Notes: generated from the sequence alone by a model not told the origin. A DNA stretch of 64,000 nt from Geosiphon pyriformis uo1 (GCA_016748015.1 JAAOMT010000134.1:564757-628756); one strand, 5' to 3'; positions 612 through 59,288 are shown, numbered from the stretch's first letter. A program made the numbers and translations.

Positions 612-2312
612 ATGGCATGTTTCCATCTCAGTGATTTAAATTCAAGTGCAGTCACTAGTCACGTCCACACATTTTTTGCTAAAATGTCGGCAAAAAAATA
701 TAACCCTCCCTTCACAGCTGACTTGCCCAGTCGCTTAGAGGCCTTAAAATTGAAAGAAAAGTTGGACAAGGTTACTTTTAAACAGGAACCGAACGAGCTG
801 GGTGTTAAAAATTTCGCTACCGCTCGAGAACCGGTTGAAGAAACCTTTAGGAATGAGACGAAGCCGGTTAATTCAACTTCTATGAACATGAGAGGCTCTG
901 TTAACTTGATTCCTTTCAGTCGAGATCATGTTCAGATCAAACAAGAGTCCCCGGATTCAACTTCTACAAACCCAAAACGACGACATTCTCCCGGCGACCG
1001 CCCCCTTCCTGGACCATTTAATAGTTCTAATTATTTTTCTAGAAGTATCAAGAGAGAAAGTAGTAGTCAAAGTGACGATGACAGTATTCAAGCCGAAGAA
1101 CAAGAGCAGAAACCTGTAATCAAAGTTGAGTTTGACGATTCTGATATTATTTTGGAAGAAGTTGAGGTGCTTCAAGAGGGTAAGGTGATGAAGGTTTTCA
1201 ATATTGAGGCGGAAGAAGAAAAAGAAGAAGAGAAAACGCAAAGGAAACTGAAGCAACGAGCACCGCTGAAATCAGACCAACAAGACGAACATCAATTTCA
1301 GCAAAACCCAAATCGACGACAAACTTACCAAAAACCAAACCAACAGCCGAAATTGAATCAGCAACAAGAAGAAATATCAAAGTTTTTCAGCTCTGTACAA
1401 CAATTGCAATTCGAGTCATCATCATCATCATCATCATCAACAACTCCCAACAACTATCGAAGGGATGATTCATCTTCTCAAGTCGTTTCAAAGTTTGGTG
1501 GAAAAAAGGATTTATCTTCATTTTCATCAAATCAATGGATACCTACATCTTATGAATCGTCAAAAGATGGACCACTTTCCAACACTCTGGTACATCATCA
1601 AAAATCACCTGAGAATCCCTCACAATGGTCATATAAGTATCGGAGGCAGCTAATTTCACAAGATGAAGCTTTTGAAGTATTTCAAAATCAACAAAATTAT
1701 TTGGTACCAAAACAAAACAATTTGAAAGAGTATTATGATCAACAATTGGAACAATTAAAAAAACAACAAGAGATTACGCAACGGCAAATTAAACTGTTGC
1801 AACAAAAACAACAACAAATAGAATCTCAAACATCAAATTCATCACAAAGTAATCAATCACAATTAAGCAGAACTTCAAAACCAAAATTATCACGATCAGT
1901 TATTCTACCTAAATCCTCTTCAAATATTGACATAAATACCGTTACTCTCACATTACTTCGTCAACTTGACTTTGTTCTTTATGAACATGTCATGGAAATT
2001 CGTCAGCAGTTATATAATTACATTGCTCAACGTAAAAGAGATCCTATTATTGAAGGCATTATGAGTTGGGGTGTTGCAAAGCCATTTATTGAACGATGGT
2101 GGTTTTCACAATTCAAAGAATATTTAGCTAATCATGGACATGTGAATGTAGCTGATAAAATTGTTAATAAGGTATTAAAGAATTATTACATTACGAGACA
2201 TGATGTATTCAGAAAAAAATGTAAAAAAGAAAAAATAATTGCTATGAAAAATCTTGGTGTTCATTATGACAATAATTTCAGTCATAATAATAACAATAAT
2301 AACAATAATAAC

Positions 2313-2360: not shown

Positions 2361-3319
2361 ATTAGTACTATAAATAAATATATATATAAACTATCCAATT
2401 TTATTGTTCACAAATAAAAATTTACTATGATACTGTAAAAATAAATATTTAATTTAAAATCTATTTTGTTTAAGATGCCTAATTTAAGAAAAAATAGTTG
2501 TGACTTAATGCTTAATACAATTATTTTATTATCGTGAAGCCCAATCACTATCTATTACAATACGACCATAAAATTGGCCCTAAAATAAACGTGACCAGAC
2601 AAAATAATATAAAAATAACATGATAAAAATAATTTAGGAAATAATGATTTAAAATCATTGAAAATCAAAATATTTTACATATTATTTTTATTGTTGTTGT
2701 TGTTTAGTTTTATTAAAACATCAAAAATATATACTGTGGCCAAGTTAATAATTTGTGATGGTTTGTACCATTTATTCAAGTGCGTACTTTCACATGTCTT
2801 ATTCTCACACGCGAATTTATTTTGATAACTTTGCCACAATACTCTATTCGCCACAATGCCAAGTAATTATTAAAATTTATAATAACTGTTTAATTTTCAT
2901 ATGTTAATATTAATTATAAAATCGTTATTTTGCACCAAAAAGTTATTCAAAAAATGTAAATATTAAACATAACTTTCAAATAAGTATTAAATTATCAAGC
3001 CTTGAAATTTTTAAAAATATATAAATCAGCAAAACATTATACAATTAACGAAATGTGACACTGCTGGTATCAAACTTATCATCAAATAAAAACTGTTGAG
3101 CATTCTTTGAATCCATAAATTTTGTGCGAGACTTCCAGTTGCGATAATAAGATTAAAATTATGGATATATGTCTGTTTGAGTGTCAAGAGGGTTTATAAT
3201 ATAATTCAGGCTTGTCAATAAGTATTTTGGCTAAAGATATAATTTGTTAAAATAATTGGTCAAAACATTCAAATTTTCAAGGTAACAAGAAGATGAATAG
3301 AAATCTGGTTTCATGTGAA

Positions 3320-5781
3320 TCATGTTAGCATTTTGGACATGTATGGCCCTAAAAGCAAGATGAAAACCCTCATTAGAGAAAAAATCACCATAAAAAAAAT
3401 TAAAATATCTGAAGAAAACTTACCATCTAATTCATACCCCAATTTGACATAATAATGCCTAACACCAACGCCACTAATAACACTCAATTTTTGACTACCG
3501 TGTTCATCACGCGCAATCCTTTCAGCTTCTTCCATCAACAAGGTTCCGAAACCTTGATGTTGAAATTTCGTTGGATCACGATTATGCATAGGAACTACAG
3601 AGCCGTAAACATGCAATTCTCGTACTATCGAAGTTTGAACTTTGGTGAGTTCTGGGCGAAATGTTGCCTCTGAACATTTACGCAAGCGAAGTAGCCCAAT
3701 TAAGATGTCTTGTTTGGGATCCTCATATGATAAGAATGTTTCCCACCCTCCATTAGCCACATAATCGCGGCGGATTAGTTCAACCTTTGGGAATTTCAGT
3801 GAATGGTAAAATAATTGATTGCAATAAAAAGCAGAAGTTGTTGTACCTTACCTCCTCTGGCTTAACCTTATTATGAATGTCAACTATACCGACTTCACGC
3901 GTTCTCACATCCCTACATTCAGTACCCAAGTCTTTCATTCTATTTAGAGCAAGCTCACGCAAATTTCCATGTTCAACTCCAGAAGTAACCAAAGGCATTG
4001 GAATGTCTCTAAAATATAGCAGCAGCTCTTTACATATTGAACCTCGATTAATGTGCATCTGGAAGAATGTAATCGATCACCTTTGCACACGATAAACACG
4101 TGTCCATGGCGGAACAAGGGCCAATATCCTAGCAACGAGATCGACAAGAGCGTTGGGGGAATAGTTTTTGTATCGACCAGTTCTCCAGAGTTCGTAAAGG
4201 CCTTGGATTGGAAAAAAAATTAAATATCAAGATTCGATTTTTCTTCAAGTCGCATGTTGAACTCGAGATTGCTAACCAGTTCCTCGGATGACTAATGTGG
4301 GATATATTTTTAAACCATCAGTACGATATGCTGGATTTTCAAAATATTCCTAGAAAGTAAAGGAAAGTTAAATATCTTTCAGAATAGCAGTTAACGCAAA
4401 AATTGATTTATAAAATTACCTTAAATTGTTCCAAATCTCGTTCCATCCCTACGTTGGGAAGATCTGGCATCATGTGAGCGACGACCTTAAATCCAGTATC
4501 TTTTGCTAATTGAAATGACTCAGTCACGGCTTTGACAGTATGACCACGGTTGGTATCACGAGCAACATCCTCATAAATACTTTGGACACCAATCTCAAGA
4601 CGCGTACATCCATAACGCAACATCTGACTACCATGATAAAAATCAGGGATTTTTAATAAGGGATCAAAAAAATCAAACAGTAAAAAAAAAGAGAACCATG
4701 AATCAAACCTAAGATGTGGCTTCAAACAGTAATCAGGACGAGTTTCAATCGTAATCCCAGTGCACTTCGTTTGACTTTGCTCTGAAAATCTACGATACAT
4801 CAAATTAATCAAGTTAAAAATCAGCAAACAGAATAATGATTTCAAAGGCTATTACCTAACCGCCTCATCCAAATTTTCAGTTGTATGACCAGATAGAGCA
4901 TTGTGCAAGTTGGCTATAAACCAATTTCGATAATCTTCAGATAGAGACATAAACGTTCCGCCCATTATTATATATTCAACCTTATATTTGATCGAGGAGT
5001 TAGACAAAGCATGTAGATTGGAAATGTCAAAAAACTAAATTTTGATATAGCCCCGACCTTATCTACATTATGACCTAAACTTTTCAATTGATCTACGCGT
5101 CCTCGAGCCTGTTCCAAGGGATTATACCTAGCACGGATGGCACGCATACTGGTGGGTTCATAGCCGGTGTATGATTGTGTTGAATATTCAAAATCAGAAT
5201 CGGGACCACCTGGGCAATACCTAAGTTGAATATTGGTTCAAATGGTTATTTTTATAAGAGTTTGAAGAAAAAAATTTACCTACACGCAAACATTGCCAGT
5301 CATAGCGATGTGGGGGCATCGATGTGGCTTGCACATAACCGCGACAACGGCAATCTTTGAATAGGGGGTAAAAAATCAATCAATTCGATGTTAAAATCAA
5401 AACAAGATAAATTAAAATCTCTACCCCCGAAGCCGTCCGAACTGGTTTAGCCTTTAACTTGGGTAAAAGATATTGCTTATACTGTTCAGGGATTGCAGCA
5501 ATAATATCAACCAATTTAGGTTGAGTAGCCAGTTTGTTCTTCCGCGAATAATTAGTCTTTAGGCCATTGAGATTAACATCTTTTCCGGCATCATGAGCTA
5601 CAATTAATTCATTAACAATCTCTGCACAGGCTTTGACCATTAATTCAGCCTGATCCATAGATAGGATAAATCATCAGATTCTTCAAGCTTCATGTATTGA
5701 AATTAATGATAAATATTAAAATATCAACCTGGCTTTGACCTGTTGGAGAAGTAAAACGTCACTATAATCATACAATGGCAT
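3320..5781 (-). CDS. ELP3: Elongator complex protein 3 (radical SAM + GNAT acetyltransferase), at least 11 exons
   Basis: GT-AG exons join in frame: 5425-5658, 5284-5354, 5058-5220, 4856-4980, 4709-4789, 4420-4627, 4277-4349, 4081-4201, 3852-4008, 3424-3784, 3320-3348. Motifs [55 protein letters not shown]. First exon uncertain (ATG 5781 or 5658). Confidence 0.97.
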
Positions 5782-26069: not shown

Positions 26070-29000
26070 TCAAAAACATGAAGGACATGATCACCGATGT
26101 TACAGGTGACAATTTCTGGTGTTGAATTAAATACAAACCTGTAACTTGGTGCTCAAAGCTATTCTTGTTGTCAATAATCTGAAGGTTTTGGTTGAGTTCT
26201 TTGTATAATGGACAGAGATTTAATGATAATAGTTTTATCCATAGCTTTCTAAAACTGCAGTTTTGTCAATTTTTTTCTCAGCTTGATGGCTGGTATTCCT
26301 CTTAGTAAACTATCCTCAATCGAGTGTTCTACTCTTATTTCTGGGTCTTTTACCAGTCATGTTTATTTTGACATCAGTGCCCTGTACGTTAATCCTCAAT
26401 AGAGTTAGTAAATAACAATAAAATCAAAGTAAGAAAATAAAAAAAATAAAATAAAATAAAGAAAAAAAAAAAATAAGCCAAGGCAATTTACAAGTTAGTA
26501 TTCCATCAATAGCCATGATCAAGAGCTATTGTTCTAGTGTAGTTAAGTATCAATTACTATCAACATAAAGTATTGATAGTGGAAATGGGTTTGAAATAAC
26601 AAATAGTTATTTATTAGATGCTTGTGATTTGGAGAGTTGCTTAGATTAAATCTAAACTAAGAGATCTGTTTTTTCAGCTTCTAATCCTGCTGCTATATAT
26701 ACATAATTGAGATTCCTCAATTCCTCGATTCTTCATGACAGGAATCCTAGAATTCCTGGAATTCTGTAATTCCTTTGAGAGGAATTCTGAAATTCTGCAA
26801 TTCTTTATTGGGGAATCCTAAAATTTCTGAAATCCTGCAATTTCTGAGAGGAATTCTGGAATTCCATATTTACTATGCCTACTTCTGATTGGCTAATAAT
26901 TATGCTAATATATTTCCTATATTTTTATGAGTAACACTGAGAAAACAAGCTATGCGAACTCAGACAATTTGGTAGTTGACGAAACCATAGATGACTCTAT
27001 GCTGCAGAGAATACACACTTGTACCTACGTGTTGGACCAGCTGCCGAAAGCTTTTTTATTCACTAATCTAAGTGACAACAATAATAATGACATCTTGATG
27101 TTTCCATCACCCAAATTCGATGGTTCCAGGCAGATTCCGATCATCAGATTACATGTTTCAAATAAACGGAATTTTGATTTAGCCAAATCCTTTGCGTTGG
27201 ACATTGATCTTTCTGCAGTATCTGGTAAAACTTTTAATGACAAATTAATGAATGTAAAAAAGATTTTTTATTGTGTGGATGGATTTGGGAGAGCCTCTAC
27301 TCCCTCAAAATTCCCAGGAATAATCAGATCTTCTTTTATATCTGAGTTGAGTCTGAACAAGACTAAGGAATTGGCAATCTGTGAAAAATTAATGATTAAT
27401 GAAAATCTTAGGAAGGTAAACATTCAGTCAGATTGGGAAATAATTGTCAAGAAAATTTCTGTGGCTCTTCCAAAGTTGGCTGTGCAATCAGTCTTTTCTA
27501 AATTTGGTAAGATTGTATCAATCAAAATACAACTGATTGGTCTGTGGCAAAAAGCTTTTATTGAGTATAAATTATCTGAGATAGCTGATTTGGTTGCAGT
27601 TAAATAGTCTGTGCTTGTGAGGAAAGATTCTGTTTGTGTGGCAAAAGCAATTGGTGATAAGCAAATATGAGTATCCAAAAATCAGCATCAGGCATTGTTT
27701 TACACTTTCCCAATTAGCACTACTGCTCATGATCTTTCTGGTCTGTTGGATTCATATGGTGAGAAAATCTGTGTTATTGGCTGTAATCTGGTTACATATG
27801 TTCATAATAGGTGTGCTGTCATTTGTTTTGTTGATGAAGCATCTAAATTGGCTGCTATTGATTCGGCTCCGATCTTCAAGGGTGTGGGTTTGTGTTGGGC
27901 TGGTCTTTCTCTGACCTGTTGTACAGCATGTAAACAGTTCAGTCATGTTTCTGGTGTCTGTTCTGTAAGTAAGAATTCTGGTAGTCATGGCAAGCATGTG
28001 GTTATCTCTCAGGATCAGGTTCATCTGGCTAATATATATAGAAAAAAACAAACTCCCATTACCCGTCCAGTTTCCTTTAGTGGTAAAACATGGGCCTAGA
28101 TTGCTGGCGACTCTCCCTTTCATGTGGTTTCTTTAGCCGTGTCTGGTGTTGGTTTGATTTCAGTTGTAAAACCTCTTTTAATGGCCTCTGGATCTCTTGA
28201 CATATCTGATTTGGGTAATTGTTTGGCATCTTTGGAATGCTCTTTAGAGCTCTTAGCCAATTAGGTTTCTGGTATTATGAAAAAACTGAGCTTTGTTGAA
28301 TTGGTGCCATTGGCACCTCCTTCTTGTGTTTCTTCTCCAGCTGTTTCTGTGTCTGTGGGTTTGGTTGAGGATTCAGATATAGTTCTGGATAGTGGATCAA
28401 CTTTGTCTGTCCTTCCTTTTTCTGGTGCTAATGGATCTATAGTTGTTCTTAGTTCTAGCAGTTCAAAGGTTCTTACCTCTAAAGTAGGCAGTTTGGAATC
28501 TAAGATGTCTGCTCTGGAGGCTTCTATTGGTTCAGTTCTGATGAGATTGGATATCTTGTGTTCTAATTCAGGTTCTTCCATTCATTCTCCGTTCCAATGA
28601 GTGATTTGGTTTGGAAATTTACAACGTGCAATGTTCAGGATATTAATGTTCCTGTTAAGCAAGCAGACATTGTTCATTGGCATGTAAGTTCTGGAAAACA
28701 AAGTTGAGGTCCTCTGCTGGGCCATGGATCAAGGATAAGTTTGATGGGGTTTGAATTTTTACTTCTGGTTTGGATGTTGGTTATCTTGGTGCCAGTGTTG
28801 CTGTGATTATGAACAATTCTTTGGCTTGCCATGTTTCTAAGGTTGATGAGATTCCTGGTCAGGTTGTTTCTGTGTGACTGTTGTTTAAAGGCAAGCTCTC
28901 AGTGACTGTACTCAGTTTGTATGCCGGTGCTTCTTCTAGTATTTGTTTTGGCCAGGCATCTGAGATTAATTCTATTATTGCCAAGGCTGTTAATACCAGC

Positions 29001-48452: not shown

Positions 48453-49754
48453 TCATGTCGAAAATAATACGAAAATATCTGTAAAATGTTCAATTTCTTT
48501 GGTATAGCCTGAGATGATATCTGATATTTTTAGACCACCAACTCTTTGCAATCCAGGACTGAGAGAGACAAATTCGAGTTGGAAATCAATAATTCCATCG
48601 GGTGCTAATTCCCCTAATGGCTTGGTGGAGGGGCCACTTAATAGCACAGAACCCATTTTACTTTTTACGGCCGTTACCACCACTTTCAATACACAGGTTG
48701 TGCGATTTCTGATACGACATCCAAGGGTGAACGGTTTTTCTAACACGATCAAGGGAGGTATTTTCGTGACAGACAACTCAATTTCTTCCAAAATTGGCGG
48801 TTTTCGTGTTAATTGACTTGTCTGTAATCTTCCGGTTTCACCTGAATTTGAACGCCATACAATGTCCAGCTTTCCAAGTGCATTTGTGGTTCTTGCTAAA
48901 CGATCTTCTATCCCTGGTTTCGGAATTAACATATATAAATATTGTCTTACATCTTGGGGATTTAAATAATTTTGAATTCCAAAGACACTCTCAAACTCTT
49001 CCTCCTGTGTTTCTGGTATTTCCTGGGCGTTTTCCGAGTTAAGCAGTATCTCTTTTTCCATAATACCATCACTCTTTATCCCTGAACTATCGCTGACTTT
49101 TGACCTAACTTCGACACCATATTCATCAACCACAAAATTAAGGTCTTTAAAACCAAATATTTCACCTGATTCAAATTTCATTCGTTCCAAGTACATTTCT
49201 CTATCGGCTACATTTTGAACTTGAACCTCCAAAAAAACTTTCCCATCAGCCATATTATTTACTTTTGTCTTGACAGCCAATGGGTTCATCACTTGAAACC
49301 TATATAGTTTTCGAATATTTCTTTTCTCTCCATCATTGTTAAAATAAATAGCTGAACACAGAAGGACATGTACACCCAGTTCTTTAATTTCGTGCTGCAA
49401 GTGATGTTCTGTTGTTTTACTCGGCTCAAGCTTAATCAACGGTTCACTAATTGTATCTAATAGAGGGAAGCGTTGAGTGTTGGTCTGTATCTCAGCTTTT
49501 ATTCCAATTTCGCGAGCTGTTTGAACTGACTCGTTTGAAATTTTAACTAAACTACTAAAAGTTTCACCAAGGTACACATTTCCGAAAGAGATTGGTGTAT
49601 TTGATGATTCATTAGCCGCTAATTCTGCTTGGACTGCTTCTGCAGTTGCAATAATATTTGTTTCAATGCTTGAATTTTTTATACCAGTAATTAAAAGGTT
49701 TGGGAGTCTAATAACTTTCAGGGATAAAAGTTGCTTCTCTCGTGTTTGCTCCAT
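48453..49754 (-). CDS. TRAPPC13: Trafficking protein particle complex subunit 13 (DUF974 family), intronless
   Basis: SFGNVYLGETF, HEIKELGVHVL, FLEVQVQN, LGKLDIVWRS...GRLQT. Confidence 0.92.
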   Translation of the reverse strand: MEQTREKQLLSLKVIRLPNLLITGIKNSSIETNIIATAEAVQAELAANESSNTPISFGNVYLGETFSSLVKISNESVQTAREIGIKAEIQTNTQRFPLLDTISEPLIKLEPSKTTEHHLQHEIKELGVHVLLCSAIYFNNDGEKRNIRKLYRFQVMNPLAVKTKVNNMADGKVFLEVQVQNVADREMYLERMKFESGEIFGFKDLNFVVDEYGVEVRSKVSDSSGIKSDGIMEKEILLNSENAQEIPETQEEEFESVFGIQNYLNPQDVRQYLYMLIPKPGIEDRLARTTNALGKLDIVWRSNSGETGRLQTSQLTRKPPILEEIELSVTKIPPLIVLEKPFTLGCRIRNRTTCVLKVVVTAVKSKMGSVLLSGPSTKPLGELAPDGIIDFQLEFVSLSPGLQRVGGLKISDIISGYTKEIEHFTDIFVLFST

Positions 49755-49885: not shown

Positions 49886-51272
49886 ATGTCTGACAACGAG
49901 GGTGCCTCAAATAGTAAGTTCACCATTGAAAATTTAGTCATAGCGCAAAGAATATCGCGACCCACGTTTATGAACAGCAATTATTGAGATACAAAAATTA
50001 GCAAAGTTGTTTCTATTTCTCGGTTTCCTTATTGATAAAGGCACCTCCTTGCAACTTGCTTAACTGGCCCGTTTCTTAGTGAGCAAGAAATAAAGAGGTC
50101 TCACTGTACACTCAAACCTCTCCTTATTTTGTATCAAAGACGAACTTCTCTTGGTGGCCGCGAAACAAGATTCTGAAGACATACTAGAAGATATTTTCTC
50201 GCAACCAGACACTTATAACATTAACCACGTGGATAGTATAGGCAATGCTGCGTTGCATTACGCGTAAGTTACTATTTAGTTGTTTATTATTTTTCCGGTT
50301 TTGCATATATAATTGATCTATCAAAATACCGAAACCTTGTGCCGTCATCGATCATGATCGACTTTTATGGAAATTGGTCATGAATTCTATTATCTCGATT
50401 GAATAAAGGGCTCAATTCGGTTCATTAACAGCCATTCAGCTGCTTCTACAACAGCCCAACATTAAGCTTGACTTACAGAATCGTCTTGAACGGGATACTC
50501 CTTTACATAAGGCAGTTCAGTACTTGGACGATCCTTCAGTCGCTTTGGAGATAGGTAAATATTTGTTTTTTTAAAGCAAATTGGGAAATTCTTTCTAAAT
50601 CTTTAAATTGTGAAAGTACCAGTTTTTGTAACGATCAAAAGTTAAAATCCTGGGCCCTTTTCAAGTTTCCACAAGAGATAGTTTTGACGCTCACAGATGT
50701 TCTTAAAAGAAGAATGAGACTTGCAATAAAAGTATACCTGGGCACTCTTTGAAATTCGTGCTCTTCCTATACACATTGGGTTCATAGTGTTATCTTTCTC
50801 ATGTACTTCTCGTTTGTCAATTGTATTTCCAAATGGCAAGAAAAGATGAATAAAACCATTTTCATTTCATAAATTAATGACATCTTTTATTTATTTACAC
50901 GGCAGTAAAGTTATTGATCGATGCGGGGGCTGACCCAACGTAGGTGTCTGAAATACTTTTTCTTTGTTTCTTGCATCCCTTACCCAAAATATTAGTGAAA
51001 AACTTTTCCTCCGCTAAATAGAATACAAAATAAAAATCGACAAAGGCCAGAGAATTTAGTTCATCCGGGCAACCAGGAACTGAAAAAATTGCTACAACAG
51101 GCCTCGATGGCACTTCAAGTGGTAAATGGATCGATCTCCCTATTAATTGCTTATTAGACCTTTCTTTCAATCTTTTTAGTTTAATCCTGATTCACATAAA
51201 CTATAGGATGCCGGTGATATTGCAGTAGACGACTCTGAGGAGGATGGCGGCACAGCTAGTGATTCGGATTAA
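49886..51272 (+). CDS. Small ankyrin-repeat protein (YCR051W-like), 6 exons; absent from the ORF track
   Basis: Spliced: MSDNEGASN/NELLLVAAKQD...GNAALHYA/AQFGS...DTPLHKAV.../VKLLIDAGADPT/IQNKNRQRP.../acidic tail, TAA 51270-51272. Confidence 0.9.
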
Positions 51273-51806
51273 GGACATTGAGGATGATGACGATGATTGT
51301 ACGTTATTAAAAATTAGGTGGGTTTGGAATCTGATTATTCGCTGCACATAGACTCTTATTTTGAATAGTTTATTCGAAATTTTTGATTTAATTTCTGATA
51401 AACCTCTTTGAAAGAATTTCAATCCTGGGGATTAACACATAATTCCAATCTGGCGATCATTTTCCTACAATAGGCATATTTGCACTTTATTTTTTTAAAG
51501 CAAACTTGATAAGAAGTTTACAATCTTTTCAATTACACAATATTGAGATGAAACATTGACATTGAAAATTTAGGATCAAGTTTTATTAATACTTTGAGAT
51601 CAAATGAATATGATTTTACCCAATACAATAATTTTTATTTGTACATTGTTGTGTAATTTTATCAAAACAAAGCTTGCAAAGTTATTAAAAATATTTTCTA
51701 ATAAAATTGATAATTAAAATGTTGAAAAAAATAAAAAAGTTCATAATATATTAATTTGAATTTTAAGTTTAATATATAATTTAGAAAAAAACTATTTATT
51801 TAAAAA

Positions 51807-51842
<36 letters not shown>

Positions 51843-52037
51843 TATAAATTGATTTTTGTTTATCTTTTGCTAAAATCTATACAAAATTATTATATCATGT
51901 AAGCAAAAAGTTAGGTTATCACAATCTTAAAATAATTGATAATTGTAGTCTTTAATAATTCTTGTTATTGCAAAATATAATTGAAATTGATTCGTGGTTT
52001 TTTAATATATTTAAATTTAATATTTGTTGTTTTAATT

Positions 52038-52185
52038 TTAAATATATGGGCGAATTCTGACCTCAATTTTGTTGATTGTATCTTTTAGCACTGGTAAGAT
52101 ATCTGATCATTCTTGCCTAGTTATTTCTCGTAAGTTTCCAGCATGACGTTTTGTACACACTGCTTAATGAGCTTTAGTTTGTGAT
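52038..52185 (-). pseudogene. Truncated HIT-hydrolase-like segment continuing ORF B after a frameshift; TGA=Trp
   Basis: SQTKAH*AVCTKRHAGNLREITRQE(TGA)SDILPVLKDTINKIE resembles the HIT pattern PxxxGHxLVxPKRH...LxxEEWxxL; ends before the HxHxH motif. Confidence 0.6.
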
Positions 52186-52626
52186 CTCAATATTAAACCA
52201 GAAAAAACTCCCTCCAAAGTCTGACAATCAACATTTATACATTTTTTTTTCATGTACCTTAACATTATCACAAGTATGACAAACTATTTCATCTTTTTCT
52301 ACACTTTTCGTGTAAATATAACTGGGAGTGTTATCATCTTTTCAATTAAAATGTTGATCTTGTTTACCTCTTTCAATTTCTTTCTGGCAATTACGACATT
52401 GGGAACATTTATAACCTCGACTGTCTTCATAAGCAGTGACATCTCAATCCAACATAATTTTGCATTGAGGACAATATGTAGTGAATCTATCTCATCTCCC
52501 ATTGCCTTTGTCGTTTAACCTTCTCACCCTAAAAGGTCAATCAAAATTTTCTTTATTTTTTAACCTTTTGTAAAGTTTCTCTAAAGATCTTTTTTTTATT
52601 TCTTTCTCAGTCCGCAGTTTTTTCAT
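52174..52626 (-). pseudogene. Code-4 ORF B, 150 aa, Lys/Cys-rich with several CxxC pairs; Mollicutes-related endobacterium-like
   Basis: ATG 52626 to TAA 52174 with five TGA, one TGG and no internal TAA/TAG. Confidence 0.7.
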
Positions 52627-52762
52627 CTAATTCTTTTTGAATTAAATTTTGTGAACAATTTCAATAACAGAATTCAACATGTTCTCTTTCTTCTTCATCT
52701 CATCAGTTAAAAGTTAAACCTTCTTTTATATTATTACAATTAAAACATTTTTCTTTAGTCAT
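52553..52762 (-). pseudogene. Code-4 ORF A, 69 aa (MTKEKCFNCNNIKEGLTFNWWDEEE...), overlapping ORF B by 74 nt
   Basis: ATG 52762 to TAA 52553 with four TGA and no internal TAA/TAG. Confidence 0.65.
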
Positions 52763-53375
52763 GATTACTTATTAATATAGTAAGTTTTAAGCAAAAAAAA
52801 AAAGGCACGATAACTATTTTAATACAAAAAAAAGCTTTGAACATTAATACTGTGTTCAGAAATCTCATTAAAAGCTGAAATAGAACAGTAAGTTTGTATT
52901 AAAATTTTTTGTCCGGATATTTTTGTCTTTTGTTTTGTAATGGTACATCATTATCCTGCTTTCTTCTCTTAATATTTATTATTTTTCGTTCTTGATAAAT
53001 TTCATAAGTAATTTTTTCGTTATCTAGATATTCTTGTAAAGACTTGGTTTCCATTAGTTTGAAAATGTAAGGTACAATTTTATCACCTTGTTTTTTTTTC
53101 AAAATGCTTCTGATAGTGCTGTAATTCTTTTTTCATATAGGATACAGGTTTAGCCCTATATTTAGCACACAATGAAATTTTACCAGGTGTTACAACTGAT
53201 CACTGGAAGATCATTGATAATTGAATGTTACCATTTGCACTGAGCTCACATCAAAGCATTCAAAAAAAACAAAAAAAAAACACCATAATTCTTGATCAAA
53301 GTGTCTGAGCAACCATACACAATTATTTATTAGAATAATGTGGTTACTATTTATAACATCTAGAATTTGTGCTAC

Positions 53376-54972
53376 TCAACAATCAATCTCTATGGGTAGT
53401 CTTAAAACATCCCGAACAGTTTTTGCCTCAGGCCGCAACACTTCGCAGTTAATTTCTTCTAAAATTGTTGCTTGCATAAGCAACTCATCCTACAGGAAGA
53501 GAGGCAAAGTATTTAGAAGAATTTCGTGTATAAACATCAAGCAATGCCATAGTTTTAATCTAAATAATACATGGAATATTCCCATAAGTTGGAGGATAGT
53601 TTTGTATTTGGTGCGACCGTCAAAAGGGAAGGGTATGGTAGCTGTCGCGAGCTCAGTGGCGAAGAAGTGTCCATCTTCCAGCATATTCATGGAGTAAAGC
53701 GTTAACCGGTCATCTGAGAAGAGAGAACACTTTTAGAATTTCTGATAGCCATCATGATTATCACATAAAATGCCACCTACCGATCACAAGACTGCTAAAG
53801 ACCTTTAATCGGATTGCAAGCTCAATTTTACAATCGAGATGATTGGGAAGTAGGGATACTAGATTTAATATGTCAGTCCTCAGTGTCTTCTTCGTGTCAC
53901 CGATTGTGTGACGTGTTGTATAATTTGACGGTGGACCAGCAACCTCAAGATGGAAGATTTCCTGGTTATCCGCGAGCCGAATTCCTTTTGAATCAACTTT
54001 TACAATGCCTGATGTTGTCGCTGACTTCGCAATTTTTGCAGCTCGTTCATGTGCTTCGATCCATTCAAACGATATCGTGCCAAATGTGGTTTCGTAGAAT
54101 TTGAAAAGAGAAGCAATATTGTATGTGGTAAATTTTCGCTCGCGTTCATATTGTACTGAATTTCATGGGAAAATGTATCTGCTTACCACCATCAGTATTG
54201 TTAGAGCCCGCAACGCGTGGTTTTTCCGCTAAGCTCACATCTAGCTCCTTGATGATCTCGCCAGTCTGCTGCATGTATGCAGCATCAAAAAACGTCCAAC
54301 GCAACAATCTGACTCTTCTGCTTTGAGGCAGCCTTGGGAATCAATCAGGTGGATAGTGCATAATTAACATTCGTTGTCTAAGGAAATACCAATATCGTGT
54401 TATATACCTTCTTCTGAGCAAGTTCCTCATCAAGCCTAAAAGATTCCAAAAGCCCCTGCAATGTGGTCGGAGATTTCTGGAACAACAAAAAATCTGAAAA
54501 TATTCGCTCTAAAGGGAACATCCCGAACATATGCCATACAAGGAACTACACCCGAAGCCCCAGGAAGGAGCGATACCCCCCCCCCCCCAAGGCTGTATGA
54601 CAGCAGGAACTGCGGGTGGAACGACACCACCTCGAGGAGGAACGACACCCCCCCCCCCCAAGGCTGCGCAGACTCCCGGTTCAGAAAATGTGAGAAAGAA
54701 CAACGAAACGAAAAACCTATTTTGAGAGGAATTTTGCCATATTTCGTTGGTCATCATCCCTGCTTTCGTCAGTAATGATAGTATTTAGGATTGTTAAGTA
54801 GCACTTTTCCAGTGTCGCGAGCAACTCTTTAGACAAAGCAGCAGTAGCCCAGAGAGGCTTCACTGCCATCAGAAAACCAGTTAACGACCAGTGAACGAAA
54901 GGCATATCTTCAAAGTAGGAGGTCGCCACACTATCTGAAAGTTTCAAGAACGTCAGTGATGCAAATGAATAC
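53376..54972 (-). pseudogene. Spliced pseudogene of a lineage-expanded restriction-endonuclease-fold (Crinkler-C-terminal-like) family
   Basis: ERKF...FEWIE...KVDSKGIR...EIFHLEVAGPP...HTIGDTKK; stop at 54717-54719, another TGA near 54164, apparent internal deletion after the donor at ~54186. Confidence 0.55.
54568..54666. repeat. Direct repeat GGARCGAYA-polyC-AAGGCTG x2 in an intron
   Basis: Two long C runs with the same flanks. Confidence 0.9.
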
Positions 54973-55193
54973 CTGGGTAGATTTAAAACGTACCAAATAG
55001 TTTTTTAATTAAAGGCCTTGCCCATTGTCAAAGCAAGTTGTAGCTAAAGCTAATAATTTAACAAATGAGTCACGTGGAGATTAATTACATCAGATTGTTT
55101 TTATTAACGTAAGCACTTCAAAAATAATCGCGAGCTTGCAAGGGAGGGAAGCAGTCGGCGATAACTGTCCCTATTCTTTGGGCTTGCTAAATA

Positions 55194-56761: not shown

Positions 56762-58570
56762 ATGTCACCTGCTCCAACAGTACTCATTCTCGGGGGAGTC
56801 GGCTTTATTGGTCGAAGCTTAGTCACTTATCTTGTAGAAAATAACCTGGCATCCGAGATAAGAGTTGTGGACAAAGTTTTACCTCACACTGCCTTTTTTA
56901 ACGAGAGACAACGAGAGGCTTTTAAAAGGGTAGAGTACATTCAAAAGAACCTGGCCGACCCTGGTACGAATTTTATGTTTTCGGAGTGGTCGTGGTTGTG
57001 GTTGTGGTGGTGGTGGTGGTGGGGGTGGGGGTGGTTGTGGTGGTGGTGGTGAAAGTTTTCAATATCAGTGAACAAAGAAAAGACTTTCTTGATTCGGATC
57101 GAGAAATTCTTATTATTGAATCTCCATCATAACTTCAACTTACAAACTGACAAAGTTCGATTTTTATTTTCTGATTTAAGCTTCTATTGAGCTTATCTTT
57201 ACACGAAAGGATGCAGATCCCTATGATTTCGTGTTCAACTGCGCGGCCGAGACGAAATATTCAATGAATAAGCGAGTATGTCCGGAAATTTTACATTATT
57301 TTTCAAATTTTTAGGCATTTTTAATCAATCATTTCTCATCTCATTTATAGTTTTACGAAGAACGTATATTCCTCCTCTCAACCCGTAATGGAAGAGAAGC
57401 AGCCAAACGCGGCGTTAAATGTTTCGTTGAGCTCTCAACTGCGGAAATTTATCAATCAGACAAGGTTTGTTTTTTTAAGAATCTATTAATACGTAATTGA
57501 ATTAAAAATTAATTTTTGAAATTGAAATCGTTCAGAATCCTAGCAAAGAAGACGAAAAGGTCAAGCCTTGGACCACAATTGCTAAATATAAGCTACAAGC
57601 CGAAGAAGAACTCAAAAAGATTCCTGGGTATGAGAGGTTATAAGTTCCTCATTTGTTGATTATAATTTTAATTTAATTTACTTAATTATAAAAGTTGAAA
57701 ATTTTAGCTTGAACCTTGTAATTCTCCGGCCTGCTATAGTTTATGGTATTGGCGCAACCGGAGGGTTAAGTAAGTGTTCTTTGCCTAATATTGCATTTTT
57801 TTCTGTTGTGAAATATTTATTTGATTATCACACTTACTCAACATCGAATTTATCATTTTAGCACCACGTCTTGTGTGTGGTAGGATCTATAAAAGTTTGA
57901 AAGAAGACATGAAATTTTTATGGACCAAAGATCTCAAAATCAACACGGTACATGTGTCTGATGTTGTTCGTGCTATGTGGTATGTTGCCGTTTGGTATCG
58001 GGATAACGACAAAGCTGGGAATGGTGCTTTGGTATACAACTTGGCTGATTCTGGCAACACAGGTGAATTTATTGACAAGTTTTTTCACATTCAATAATTT
58101 AAATTTCAGCAATCCTCATGATTTCTTTATTTCCAATAGATCAAGCGAAGGTAAACAAATTTATTAGCAAAATTTTTGGAATATCTACAGGCTTTCAAGG
58201 ATCCATGATCTCTAGCTTTGCTCAGGTTTGGAATAATATTTTGATTCATGGTCTTCTGAATTATTGCTTAAATGCTGATAAAATTTTTCAACAAATTATC
58301 CAGCTAAACCTTGATGATGCTACTGAAGATATAAACGACAAACATGTTGGCCCATGGTCAAAACTACAACGAGAATCCGGGATAAAAGTGACTCCGTTGA
58401 GCCCGTACCTTGACAAAGAGCTGCTACTCAACAATGCTTTATCGATTGACGGCACGAGAATCACCAAGGAGACCGGCTTCAAGTACGAAGTTTCCGAAGT
58501 CACTTTAGAAAAACTTCAAGAGATGATAGAAGATTTCAAGAAATCAAATTTGTGGCCAAAAGATGAATAA
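56762..58570 (+). CDS. NAD-dependent epimerase/dehydratase family protein, multi-exon
   Basis: GGVGFIG, VFNCAAETKY, FVELSTAEIY, YKLQAE, ILRPAIVYG, VHVSDV, YNLAD. Confidence 0.92.
56986..57051 (+). repeat. (TGG)n/G-rich tract in intron 1 of the epimerase
   Basis: Seen directly. Confidence 0.9.
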
Positions 58571-59288
58571 TGAAGAATTGCTTTAAATAGAGAAGTCGTA
58601 CGTAATGTACATAGTACGCATCATAATCTTTTATATAACTACAATTATATATATACATATATATACAGTTTGGACAGTGAATCTCGGTTGTAACATTTTT
58701 TTTTGGAATTTTAAGTTTTGATTTGGACATCATTTTTAAATGTATGTTTGTTTTATAGAAGCATAAAAACTAGTGATGAAAATCTCATGTCTAATGGCAA
58801 ATTTGGGTTCTTTTTTCAAGTTGAACAGTGATTTGGTATAGTTTCATCATTTAATCCATTCCTGAATTGAGATCCTCAAATTTTCTACAATCCCTTATCA
58901 TATAATAATCTTGATTCCTAAATTTCCAATTTGAATCATTAAATAATACATGGTCTTTTGAAAAAGTCGTCTGTCAATGTATTATTAAGATGATTATCTT
59001 TGTTTCTTTTCTCTCCGTTACGTTTTAGCGATCTCAATAAACAATTCCTTTCTTTAAATTTCCCCTCCCGGCATTTCGGAAAATCAGATACTCTGGATAT
59101 CGGATAAAAATTTTCAATGCATTTAATATATATATCCAACACAGAAATTCCGGATTAATTTTAAAGGGATGTAAGTTCCGAGCGATAATTCGTGCACTCT
59201 TGTTGCCGCATGCCGACACGAATTGTATGTTTTCGTGATTACCCTTAAAATTGCTTTGGCCACTTTCTTTTACAGAGGACAACAGTAT

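Follow-up and report, generated by a model that had tools for sequence, protein, structure and literature searches.

We analysed a window of 64,000 nucleotides from the assembly of the fungus Geosiphon pyriformis uo1 (GCA_016748015.1, JAAOMT010000134.1:564757-628756; positions below are counted from its first nucleotide) and conclude, with a probability of roughly 0.8, that the minus-strand segment 52063-53143 is a dead, silent fragment of a genome in which UGA encodes tryptophan, most probably that of Mollicutes-related endobacteria (MRE) living in the fungus. Alignments with relatives show it to comprise the tail of a small lysine-rich open reading frame (ORF) and the opening ~240 codons of a gene whose predicted product is a zinc-ribbon, tandem-HIT (GalT-like), membrane-anchored protein. 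The fragment, we infer, has no function in the host: translation would halt at any of its ten UGA codons, and the transcript contigs leave it uncovered.

The initial annotation of this DNA had drawn attention to two overlapping, intronless ORFs on the minus strand that are open only under genetic code 4 (UGA=Trp): ORF A at 52762-52553 (69 codons and a stop, four TGA, no TAA or TAG inside) and ORF B at 52626-52174 (150 codons and a stop, five TGA, one TGG, likewise no internal TAA or TAG). Re-reading of the sequence reproduced all of these lengths, coordinates and counts, and the tryptophan-like peptide contexts quoted for the TGA codons were correct on re-translation. By itself, code-4-only openness is weak evidence, since 172 frames in the window run for 100 codons or more without TAA or TAG, many of them with several TGA codons, and since shuffling 52038-52800 2000 times produced a frame of at least 150 codons in 14 cases. 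The case for a putative code-4 insert rests on homology rather than on ORF length.

Relatives with 70-75% DNA identity are present at five other places of the same 128-Mb assembly. A paralog on a 2.3-Mb contig (C669; L002:966-2273, minus strand), which is 75% identical to the window copy, has a single frame of 436 codons, with 15 TGA and no TGG, that extends over the counterparts of ORF A and ORF B and what follows them. The window therefore holds one broken gene: both of the frames described initially exist, but they belong to a single gene, and their overlap is a frameshift artefact. The limits of the insert had been placed at 52038-52800; homology within the family spans 52063-53143 instead. 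Lesions were placed against the C669 paralog, a 96%-identical metagenome contig (L028) and contigs of two sequencing runs, X3 (a freshwater sediment metagenome) and X4 (organism B). A full-length homolog of 500 amino acids, P0003, matches the window copy including its zinc-ribbon N-terminus. The anatomy of the fragment is as follows.

52063..53143, minus strand: whole code-4 fragment, 27.8% guanine plus cytosine (GC), with limits set by homology against five other loci of the genome; both ends are truncated.
52899..53143, minus strand: 5′-truncated remnant of the small Lys-rich ORF (stop codon 52899-52901), conserved at the C659, C790, C640 and C701 loci.
52553..52762, minus strand: ORF A, with the start codon of the HIT-family gene and its first zinc-ribbon part (CxxC ... 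CxWxC), aligning with P0003 residues 8-73.
52556, minus strand: 1-bp insertion, the frameshift that creates the ORF A/ORF B overlap; the base is missing from the near-identical X3 and X4 contigs, and the paralog is in a single frame.
52209..52548, minus strand: in-frame part of ORF B with further CxxC zinc ribbons (CPQC, CSQCRNC, CHTC), aligning with P0003 residues 56-187.
52207..52209, minus strand: 2-bp deletion (bases lost after 52208), the second frameshift; L028, run X4 and C669 have two additional bases.
52164..52166, minus strand: in-frame TAA where relatives have TCA (Ser), as aligned with L028; run X4 carries another base at 52165.
52063..52206, minus strand: start of HIT domain 1, ~48 codons long (motif ..TKRHA..QEW.DILPVLKD..); one TGA codon, beginning at 52109.

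The TGA codons of ORF A begin at 52705, 52702, 52663 and 52609, and those in frame in ORF B at 52539, 52494, 52446, 52344 and 52230. The true gene portion has ten TGA and no TGG in frame; the TGG counted in ORF B is present, but it lies out of frame in the final 11 codons, behind the 2-bp deletion. The HIT gene is broken off at 52063, at about codon 240 of at least 436, and contigs of run X4 continue beyond this point into sequence reading KVYKPMGYR, like the homolog P0007. On the side of the small ORF, alignment of the termini revealed that the window copy is without the last ~55 bp common to the other loci. Short of the shared terminus by ~55 bp and cut inside the HIT gene, the fragment is thus an interior portion of the unit that lacks both ends. 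When intact, the small Lys-rich ORF has ~90 amino acids, none of them tryptophan, and in the unit it precedes the HIT gene; it is also found on an Ambispora locus (L058) and on a metagenome contig (L056).

Copies that lack the lesions of the window were found in both runs. Run X3 contains 151-nt pieces that are 97-100% identical to window positions 52213-52573, and the copy of run X4 is ~92% identical over the same interval. Both are without the extra base at 52556, and X4 also has the two bases deleted from the window copy, the TCA codon and the continuation past 52063. The freedom of these copies from the window lesions points to a live donor lineage outside the Geosiphon assembly.

At each of the ten in-frame TGA codons of the fragment, the C669 paralog has TGA as well; the window copy has diverged from this paralog with a ratio of nonsynonymous to synonymous substitution rates (dN/dS) of 0.19 over 232 codons and a dS of about 1.1, that is, with synonymous sites near saturation. 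The other relatives have TGA at several of the ten sites and otherwise TGG or a codon for F, Y, L or V; the three sites that vary most can also have P, N, S or E, and neither Arg nor TAA/TAG occurs at any of the ten. TGG is present at site 52539 in the C659 and C790 copies and at site 52109 in the C601 copy and in bacterial contigs L039 and L059, and P0003 has Trp at 7 of the 10 sites. The expectation that the TGA codons would align to Trp rather than to Arg was thus borne out. Since dS is about 1.1 while dN/dS is 0.19, most of the divergence arose while the protein was selected with TGA as an amino acid, and these codon alignments show divergence of the fragment from its paralogs under purifying selection with UGA=Trp.

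Among the 15 TGA codons in C669, the one in the motif HFYMwIVPKY falls at a conserved Arg that is encoded by CGA in several relatives. It is probably the result of CpG deamination after insertion, and the C669 copy is probably not fully intact either. One could suppose that the window fragment is likewise a relic of a native fungal gene or transposon, with TGA codons that arose in place by CGA>TGA deamination or from TGG, and the C669 case demonstrates that such decay occurs. However, none of the ten window codons is of the CGA>TGA type and none aligns to Arg, all ten are shared with a synonymously saturated copy that diverged under constraint, and intact relatives with the same TGA codons stand in bacterial operon-like contexts. 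We regard in-place decay as hardly credible.

A full HMMER scan with a stop-free 118-amino-acid piece of a paralog retrieved 69 proteins. A homology search with P0003 itself, restricted in word and sequence length, yielded 2 relatives. On a 7.2-kb metagenome contig, the gene for P0003 is flanked by gatB and mnmG, and all genes of this contig read TGA as Trp (TGA versus TGG codons: 5 versus 0 in mnmG and 4 versus 0 in gatB). When metagenomes were scanned with a Trp-free alignment, the HIT family was found on 26 soil and rhizosphere contigs. The long family-bearing contigs have 32-35% GC, use code 4 and encode, beside the HIT gene, PolC, Der, DnaJ, DnaK/GrpE, PNPase, HisRS, Lon and a Ulp1-like protease; a Logan contig (L059) carries an ABC ATPase and NusB. 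Collections of phages, plasmids and viruses yielded nothing beyond generic HIT proteins with 25-35% identity, so that no known phage or plasmid vehicle is supported.

These bacterial surroundings also bear on a mitochondrial origin, which the initial annotation had named as something to be checked. Fungal mitochondria use UGA=Trp as well, the low GC content would fit a nuclear mitochondrial DNA segment (NUMT) or a piece of a mitochondrial plasmid, and the assembly offers no mitochondrial contig for comparison. Yet the closest relatives lie on code-4 bacterial contigs with bacterial housekeeping genes; all informative contexts of intact relatives are bacterial (gatB, mnmG, polC, dnaK, der, pnp, hisS and nusB), and ~17 copies that are 35-75% identical and diverged under purifying selection are unlike the products of a single mitochondrial source. 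A mitochondrial derivation is thus very improbable.

The donor can be narrowed down by means of MnmG. The MnmG of L029, a code-4 bacterial contig, is 65-73% identical to proteins filed as Ambispora, Gigaspora, Funneliformis and Cetraspora; the closest named group after these is Erysipelotrichales, at ~52%. The matched Ambispora gerdemannii contig is bacterial, with 32% GC, code 4, aminoacyl-tRNA synthetase genes, a Met-aminopeptidase gene and an IS1595 transposase. Glomeromycotina assemblies are known to contain contaminating MRE contigs (PMC10507103, PMC11423566), and the A. gerdemannii contig is, to judge from its gene content and code, MRE contamination of this kind. With the MnmG of L029 closest to code-4 contigs in Glomeromycotina assemblies, the donor compartment is most probably of the MRE type. 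No MRE-type mnmG was found in the Geosiphon assembly itself. One rhizosphere metagenome contig carries, together with a HIT-family gene, a code-4 gene for a Ulp1-like cysteine protease of the SUMO-protease type (L057:2680-3567). Host-derived Ulp1-like proteases are a reported hallmark of MRE.

The insert occupies part of the ~2.1 kb that separate two convergent Geosiphon genes, both of them expressed and with introns; they end within 750 bp and 275 bp of it. Its neighbours are the following.

50500..51317, plus strand: left neighbour, a spliced host gene represented by its 3′ exons (GT..AG introns), from record 9 of run X2 and its joints.
53416..54500, minus strand: right neighbour, likewise a spliced host gene represented by its 3′ exons (introns CT..AC when read on the plus strand), from record 10 of run X2 and its joints; a Pfam search with it returned no family.
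48453..49754, minus strand: host TRAPPC13, standard code, with Pfam TRAPPC13_N, _M and _C at E-values of 1e-27 to 1e-36.

TRAPPC13, 2.3 kb from the insert, marks the surroundings as eukaryotic nuclear DNA; a ubiquilin-like gene nearby also uses the standard code. The flanks (50200-52062 and 53144-55000) are single copy except for a short AT-rich repeat. In run X1, which provides short-read contigs of the same organism, record 2 crosses 52063 and record 7 crosses 53143. Contigs of this run cover 51853-52783 and 52944-54500 without a single difference, and word depth is 79 in the insert and 83 and 68 in the flanks. Long reads had been proposed for this check; it is short-read contigs that bridge both junctions at flank-level depth. 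Just outside the fragment, at 51800-51852, there is a (TAA)n microsatellite, set in a stretch of 17% GC, at which the short-read contigs break.

Since MRE contigs contaminate Glomeromycotina assemblies, as published (PMC10507103, PMC11423566) and as also seen here, an endobacterial read or contig could have been wrongly joined to a fungal scaffold. The contigs that cross the junctions speak against such a mis-assembly, as does the state of the copy itself, which is broken in three places, unlike a live endobacterial gene. The fragment also lies on a large contig with spliced eukaryotic genes within 750 bp and 275 bp of its ends. We assign a very low probability to an assembly error. The proposal of DNA transfer from symbiont to host, made when the two ORFs were first described, is supported by the alignment of the TGA codons, the bacterial context of the relatives and the bridged junctions taken together.

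Transcription was assessed with run X2, which comes from the same sample. Because its contigs show canonical GT..AG joints, on both sides of the insert, the run was taken to be complementary DNA. No transcript contig of run X2 lies between 51438 and 53313; the plus-strand gene ends near 51317 and the minus-strand gene near 53416.

The fragment is one of many code-4 sequences in this genome. When P0003 was read through stops, about 17 loci were retrieved, nearly all with TGA and most also with TAA or TAG. Several of them adjoin a transposase with the Pfam domain DUF7869, which is likewise TGA=Trp and is present at a minimum of 60 loci. The further code-4 sequence that a genome scan had been expected to reveal is thus abundant, and such inserts are indeed invisible to standard-code callers, standard-code annotation overlooking the whole class.

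In C659 and C790, a DUF7869 transposase follows the small ORF and the zinc-ribbon HIT gene, and the boundaries of the unit are common to at least three copies. The window agrees with C659 and C790 in the order and spacing of the small ORF and the HIT gene. The pair of transposase and HIT gene is also carried by short metagenome contigs, and a search for the transposase yielded short contigs only. In Ambispora leptoticha (L058:7818-10570; GCA_910591765.1, CAJVPS010002367.1), all three genes, namely the small ORF, a DUF7869 transposase and a HIT gene that contains TGA codons, adjoin a Rad4/XPC-like gene, so that a second Archaeosporales assembly also carries this unit. The small ORF of this Ambispora locus ends in RKKRKIEE, which resembles a nuclear localization signal (NLS).

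Two dialects exist among the DUF7869 transposases of Geosiphon: most copies have TGA, and a subgroup has TGG at the conserved Trp and is stop-free over 148 amino acids. Copies of the TGG dialect are listed below; they are 90-93% identical to the C702 query copy.

C633:299638-300078: TGG-dialect DUF7869 transposase.
C648:284817-285257: TGG-dialect DUF7869 transposase.
C702:51377-51817: TGG-dialect DUF7869 transposase.

The HIT-family copy at L025:970-2190, minus strand (C601:367773-370018), and C643:129-689 has four TGG versus two TGA and a fuller HxQxH motif (HFQLHLV). This copy has its coiled coil and membrane tail fused in one 407-codon frame and is the most standard-code-like nuclear member of the family.

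It is possible, and we give the idea tentative weight, that the fragment derives from a code-4 composite transposon, originally complete with small ORF, HIT gene and DUF7869 transposase, that was inserted by transposition, perhaps mobilised in trans by the nuclear TGG transposases, and then lost both of its ends. The gene order and spacer, which are those of the C659 and C790 units with their transposase and shared boundaries, argue for this route, as do the abundance of transposase loci, some of them TGG and stop-free, and the presence of the same trio beside the Rad4/XPC-like gene in Ambispora. On the other hand, no transposase remnant was detected anywhere in the window by code-4 tblastn with three transposase pieces, and the flanks are unique sequence with no further element DNA. 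The fragment also fails to end at the shared element termini, being ~55 bp short on one side and broken inside the HIT gene on the other. Since both element ends are missing, no terminal repeat or target duplication is available.

In the sequence of events that we favour, a mobile unit of two or three genes, resident in MRE, would have been the source of DNA that reached the nucleus, for example after endobacterial lysis; an internal 1.08-kb piece would then have been joined into a chromosome break in the intergenic spacer, in the manner of a NUMT. After its arrival the piece acquired the 1-bp insertion, the 2-bp deletion and the nonsense codon, and it is still decaying.

Several points weigh against this interpretation. 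Scans of GTDB species genomes with alignment A3 and the Trp-free alignment A5 found no relative, the control genomes being without a mycoplasma, and the putative identity of the donor as MRE depends on contigs from metagenomes and on contaminating contigs within assemblies of fungi. The assembly itself may have been made from run X1, so that the junction test is not fully independent, and contigs alone cannot prove transcriptional silence. The Geosiphon assembly contains no COX1, and hence no mitochondrial contig, so that the mitochondrial genome was never compared directly. Finally, the HIT gene often lies beside a DUF7869 transposase, an element of eukaryotic type, in both Geosiphon and Ambispora, and the history of the unit may be more complex than simple leakage from a bacterial chromosome. 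A broader scheme, which we consider speculative and rather unlikely, is continuing two-way traffic, of which the fragment would be a single trace: the mobile unit (small NLS-like ORF, HIT cargo and DUF7869 transposase) would be kept in UGA=Trp endobacteria and repeatedly enter the nuclei of Archaeosporales (Geosiphon, Ambispora), where TGG transposases might move it on, while near-identical, lesion-free copies (92-100%) would be alive in environmental samples.

As to the product of the intact gene, the Pfam HIT family (PF01230, cut-off 21.5 bits) is recognised in P0003 (25.1 bits), the L025 piece (26.2), P0070 (32.7) and C669 read through TGA (30.9). P0007, which is 96% identical to the window over 239 bp of DNA, scores 21.3 bits, and the window copy keeps the first ~48 residues of the HIT domain. 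Pfam searches with the stop-free pieces of C669, 33-79 amino acids long, gave nothing useful. The family matches HIT proteins of the PDB, and the JGI name of P0003 is Ap4A HIT hydrolase. The chain contains two HIT-like halves; one fragment alignment mixed half 1 with half 2, exposing the internal duplication. The AlphaFold model of P0003 has a predicted local distance difference test score (pLDDT) of 53, and its top Foldseek matches are 1zwj, 6k5z, 2h39 and 1hxp (E-values 1e-8 to 1e-7, root-mean-square deviation 7-10 Å). Coming from a low-confidence model, these matches lend weak support to a predicted GalT-like two-domain fold.

With its Pfam HIT scores above the cut-off and its two HIT-like halves, the family resembles the GalT / ADP-glucose phosphorylase / Ap4A phosphorylase branch of the HIT superfamily. 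It differs from that branch in its extra N-terminal CxxC ribbons, a coiled coil towards the C-terminus, a C-terminal membrane helix that would serve as an anchor, and a reduced triad. The histidine triad HxHxHxx is not found in the subfamily, which has HFYMRVV or HFFARIV with one His at this site, beyond the truncation of the window copy; the more distant members P0011, P0014 and P0015 retain HxHxH. These features suggest that the donor protein may be a membrane-anchored nucleotide-binding protein, perhaps catalytically inactive.

Other code-4-only frames of the window (747-1511, 27703-28095, 3197-3847 and 58282-58587) were considered as candidates and rejected: they correspond to a TGA repeat, to frames opposite or beside host genes, or are unremarkable, and those inspected were spurious. 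On the minus strand, 747-1511 is a TAA/TAG-free frame of 255 codons with 14 TGA that is produced by eight consecutive TGA triplets and is not code-4 coding. The peptide of the minus-strand frame 3197-3847, which we take to resemble the C-terminal acetyltransferase part of Elongator Elp3, is probably encoded by an exon of a host gene.

The locus provides a junction-verified example of DNA movement from an MRE-type genome to the nucleus, the reverse of the direction described so far. The code mismatch acts as a built-in marker, and such DNA is not confusable with native fungal DNA. The number of loci, ~17 for the HIT family and at least 60 for the transposase, suggests that transfer has been recurrent, and counting and dating the inserts could gauge the rate at which endobacterial DNA enters the nucleus and the role of the transposon as its carrier.

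Several known systems can be compared with this locus. The DUF7869 (Sola-like) code-4 transposon units of Geosiphon share its TGA=Trp dialect, but the window holds only an internal fragment of the companion genes, with neither transposase nor ends. DNA traffic between the same partners, in the form of host-to-MRE gene transfer, is reportedly also the subject of Naito 2015 and Torres-Cortes 2015. Such transfer has been published for Glomeromycotina and Mortierellaceae (PMC10507103, PMC4916391); its direction is from fungus to MRE, whereas the last step here leads from an MRE-type genome to the nucleus. MRE are described as rich in mobile elements, highly diverse within a host and fast evolving (PMC10507103, PMC4916391), which fits the 75% identity between nuclear copies. 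A study of Rhizophagus found no MRE donors for bacterial genes (PMC5982333), and in PMC10507103 genes whose only fungal matches were in Glomeromycotina were set aside by design. Endosymbiont DNA in a host nucleus is a known event; the combination of an MRE-type donor and a fungal recipient with a code mismatch is new with respect to PMC5982333, PMC10507103 and PMC4916391. As in nuclear Wolbachia transfers (nuwts), NUMTs and nuclear plastid DNA segments (NUPTs), DNA of an intracellular resident is found in nuclear intergenic DNA, where it is non-functional, truncated and gathering frameshifts and stops, and a single genome contains many insertions of differing age. In contrast to those systems, the donor here is a Mollicutes-type endobacterium of a fungus with a code unlike that of its host, and every transferred gene is therefore dead on arrival; the recurrence of the transferred unit together with a transposase suggests a mobile vehicle rather than random pieces of chromosome.

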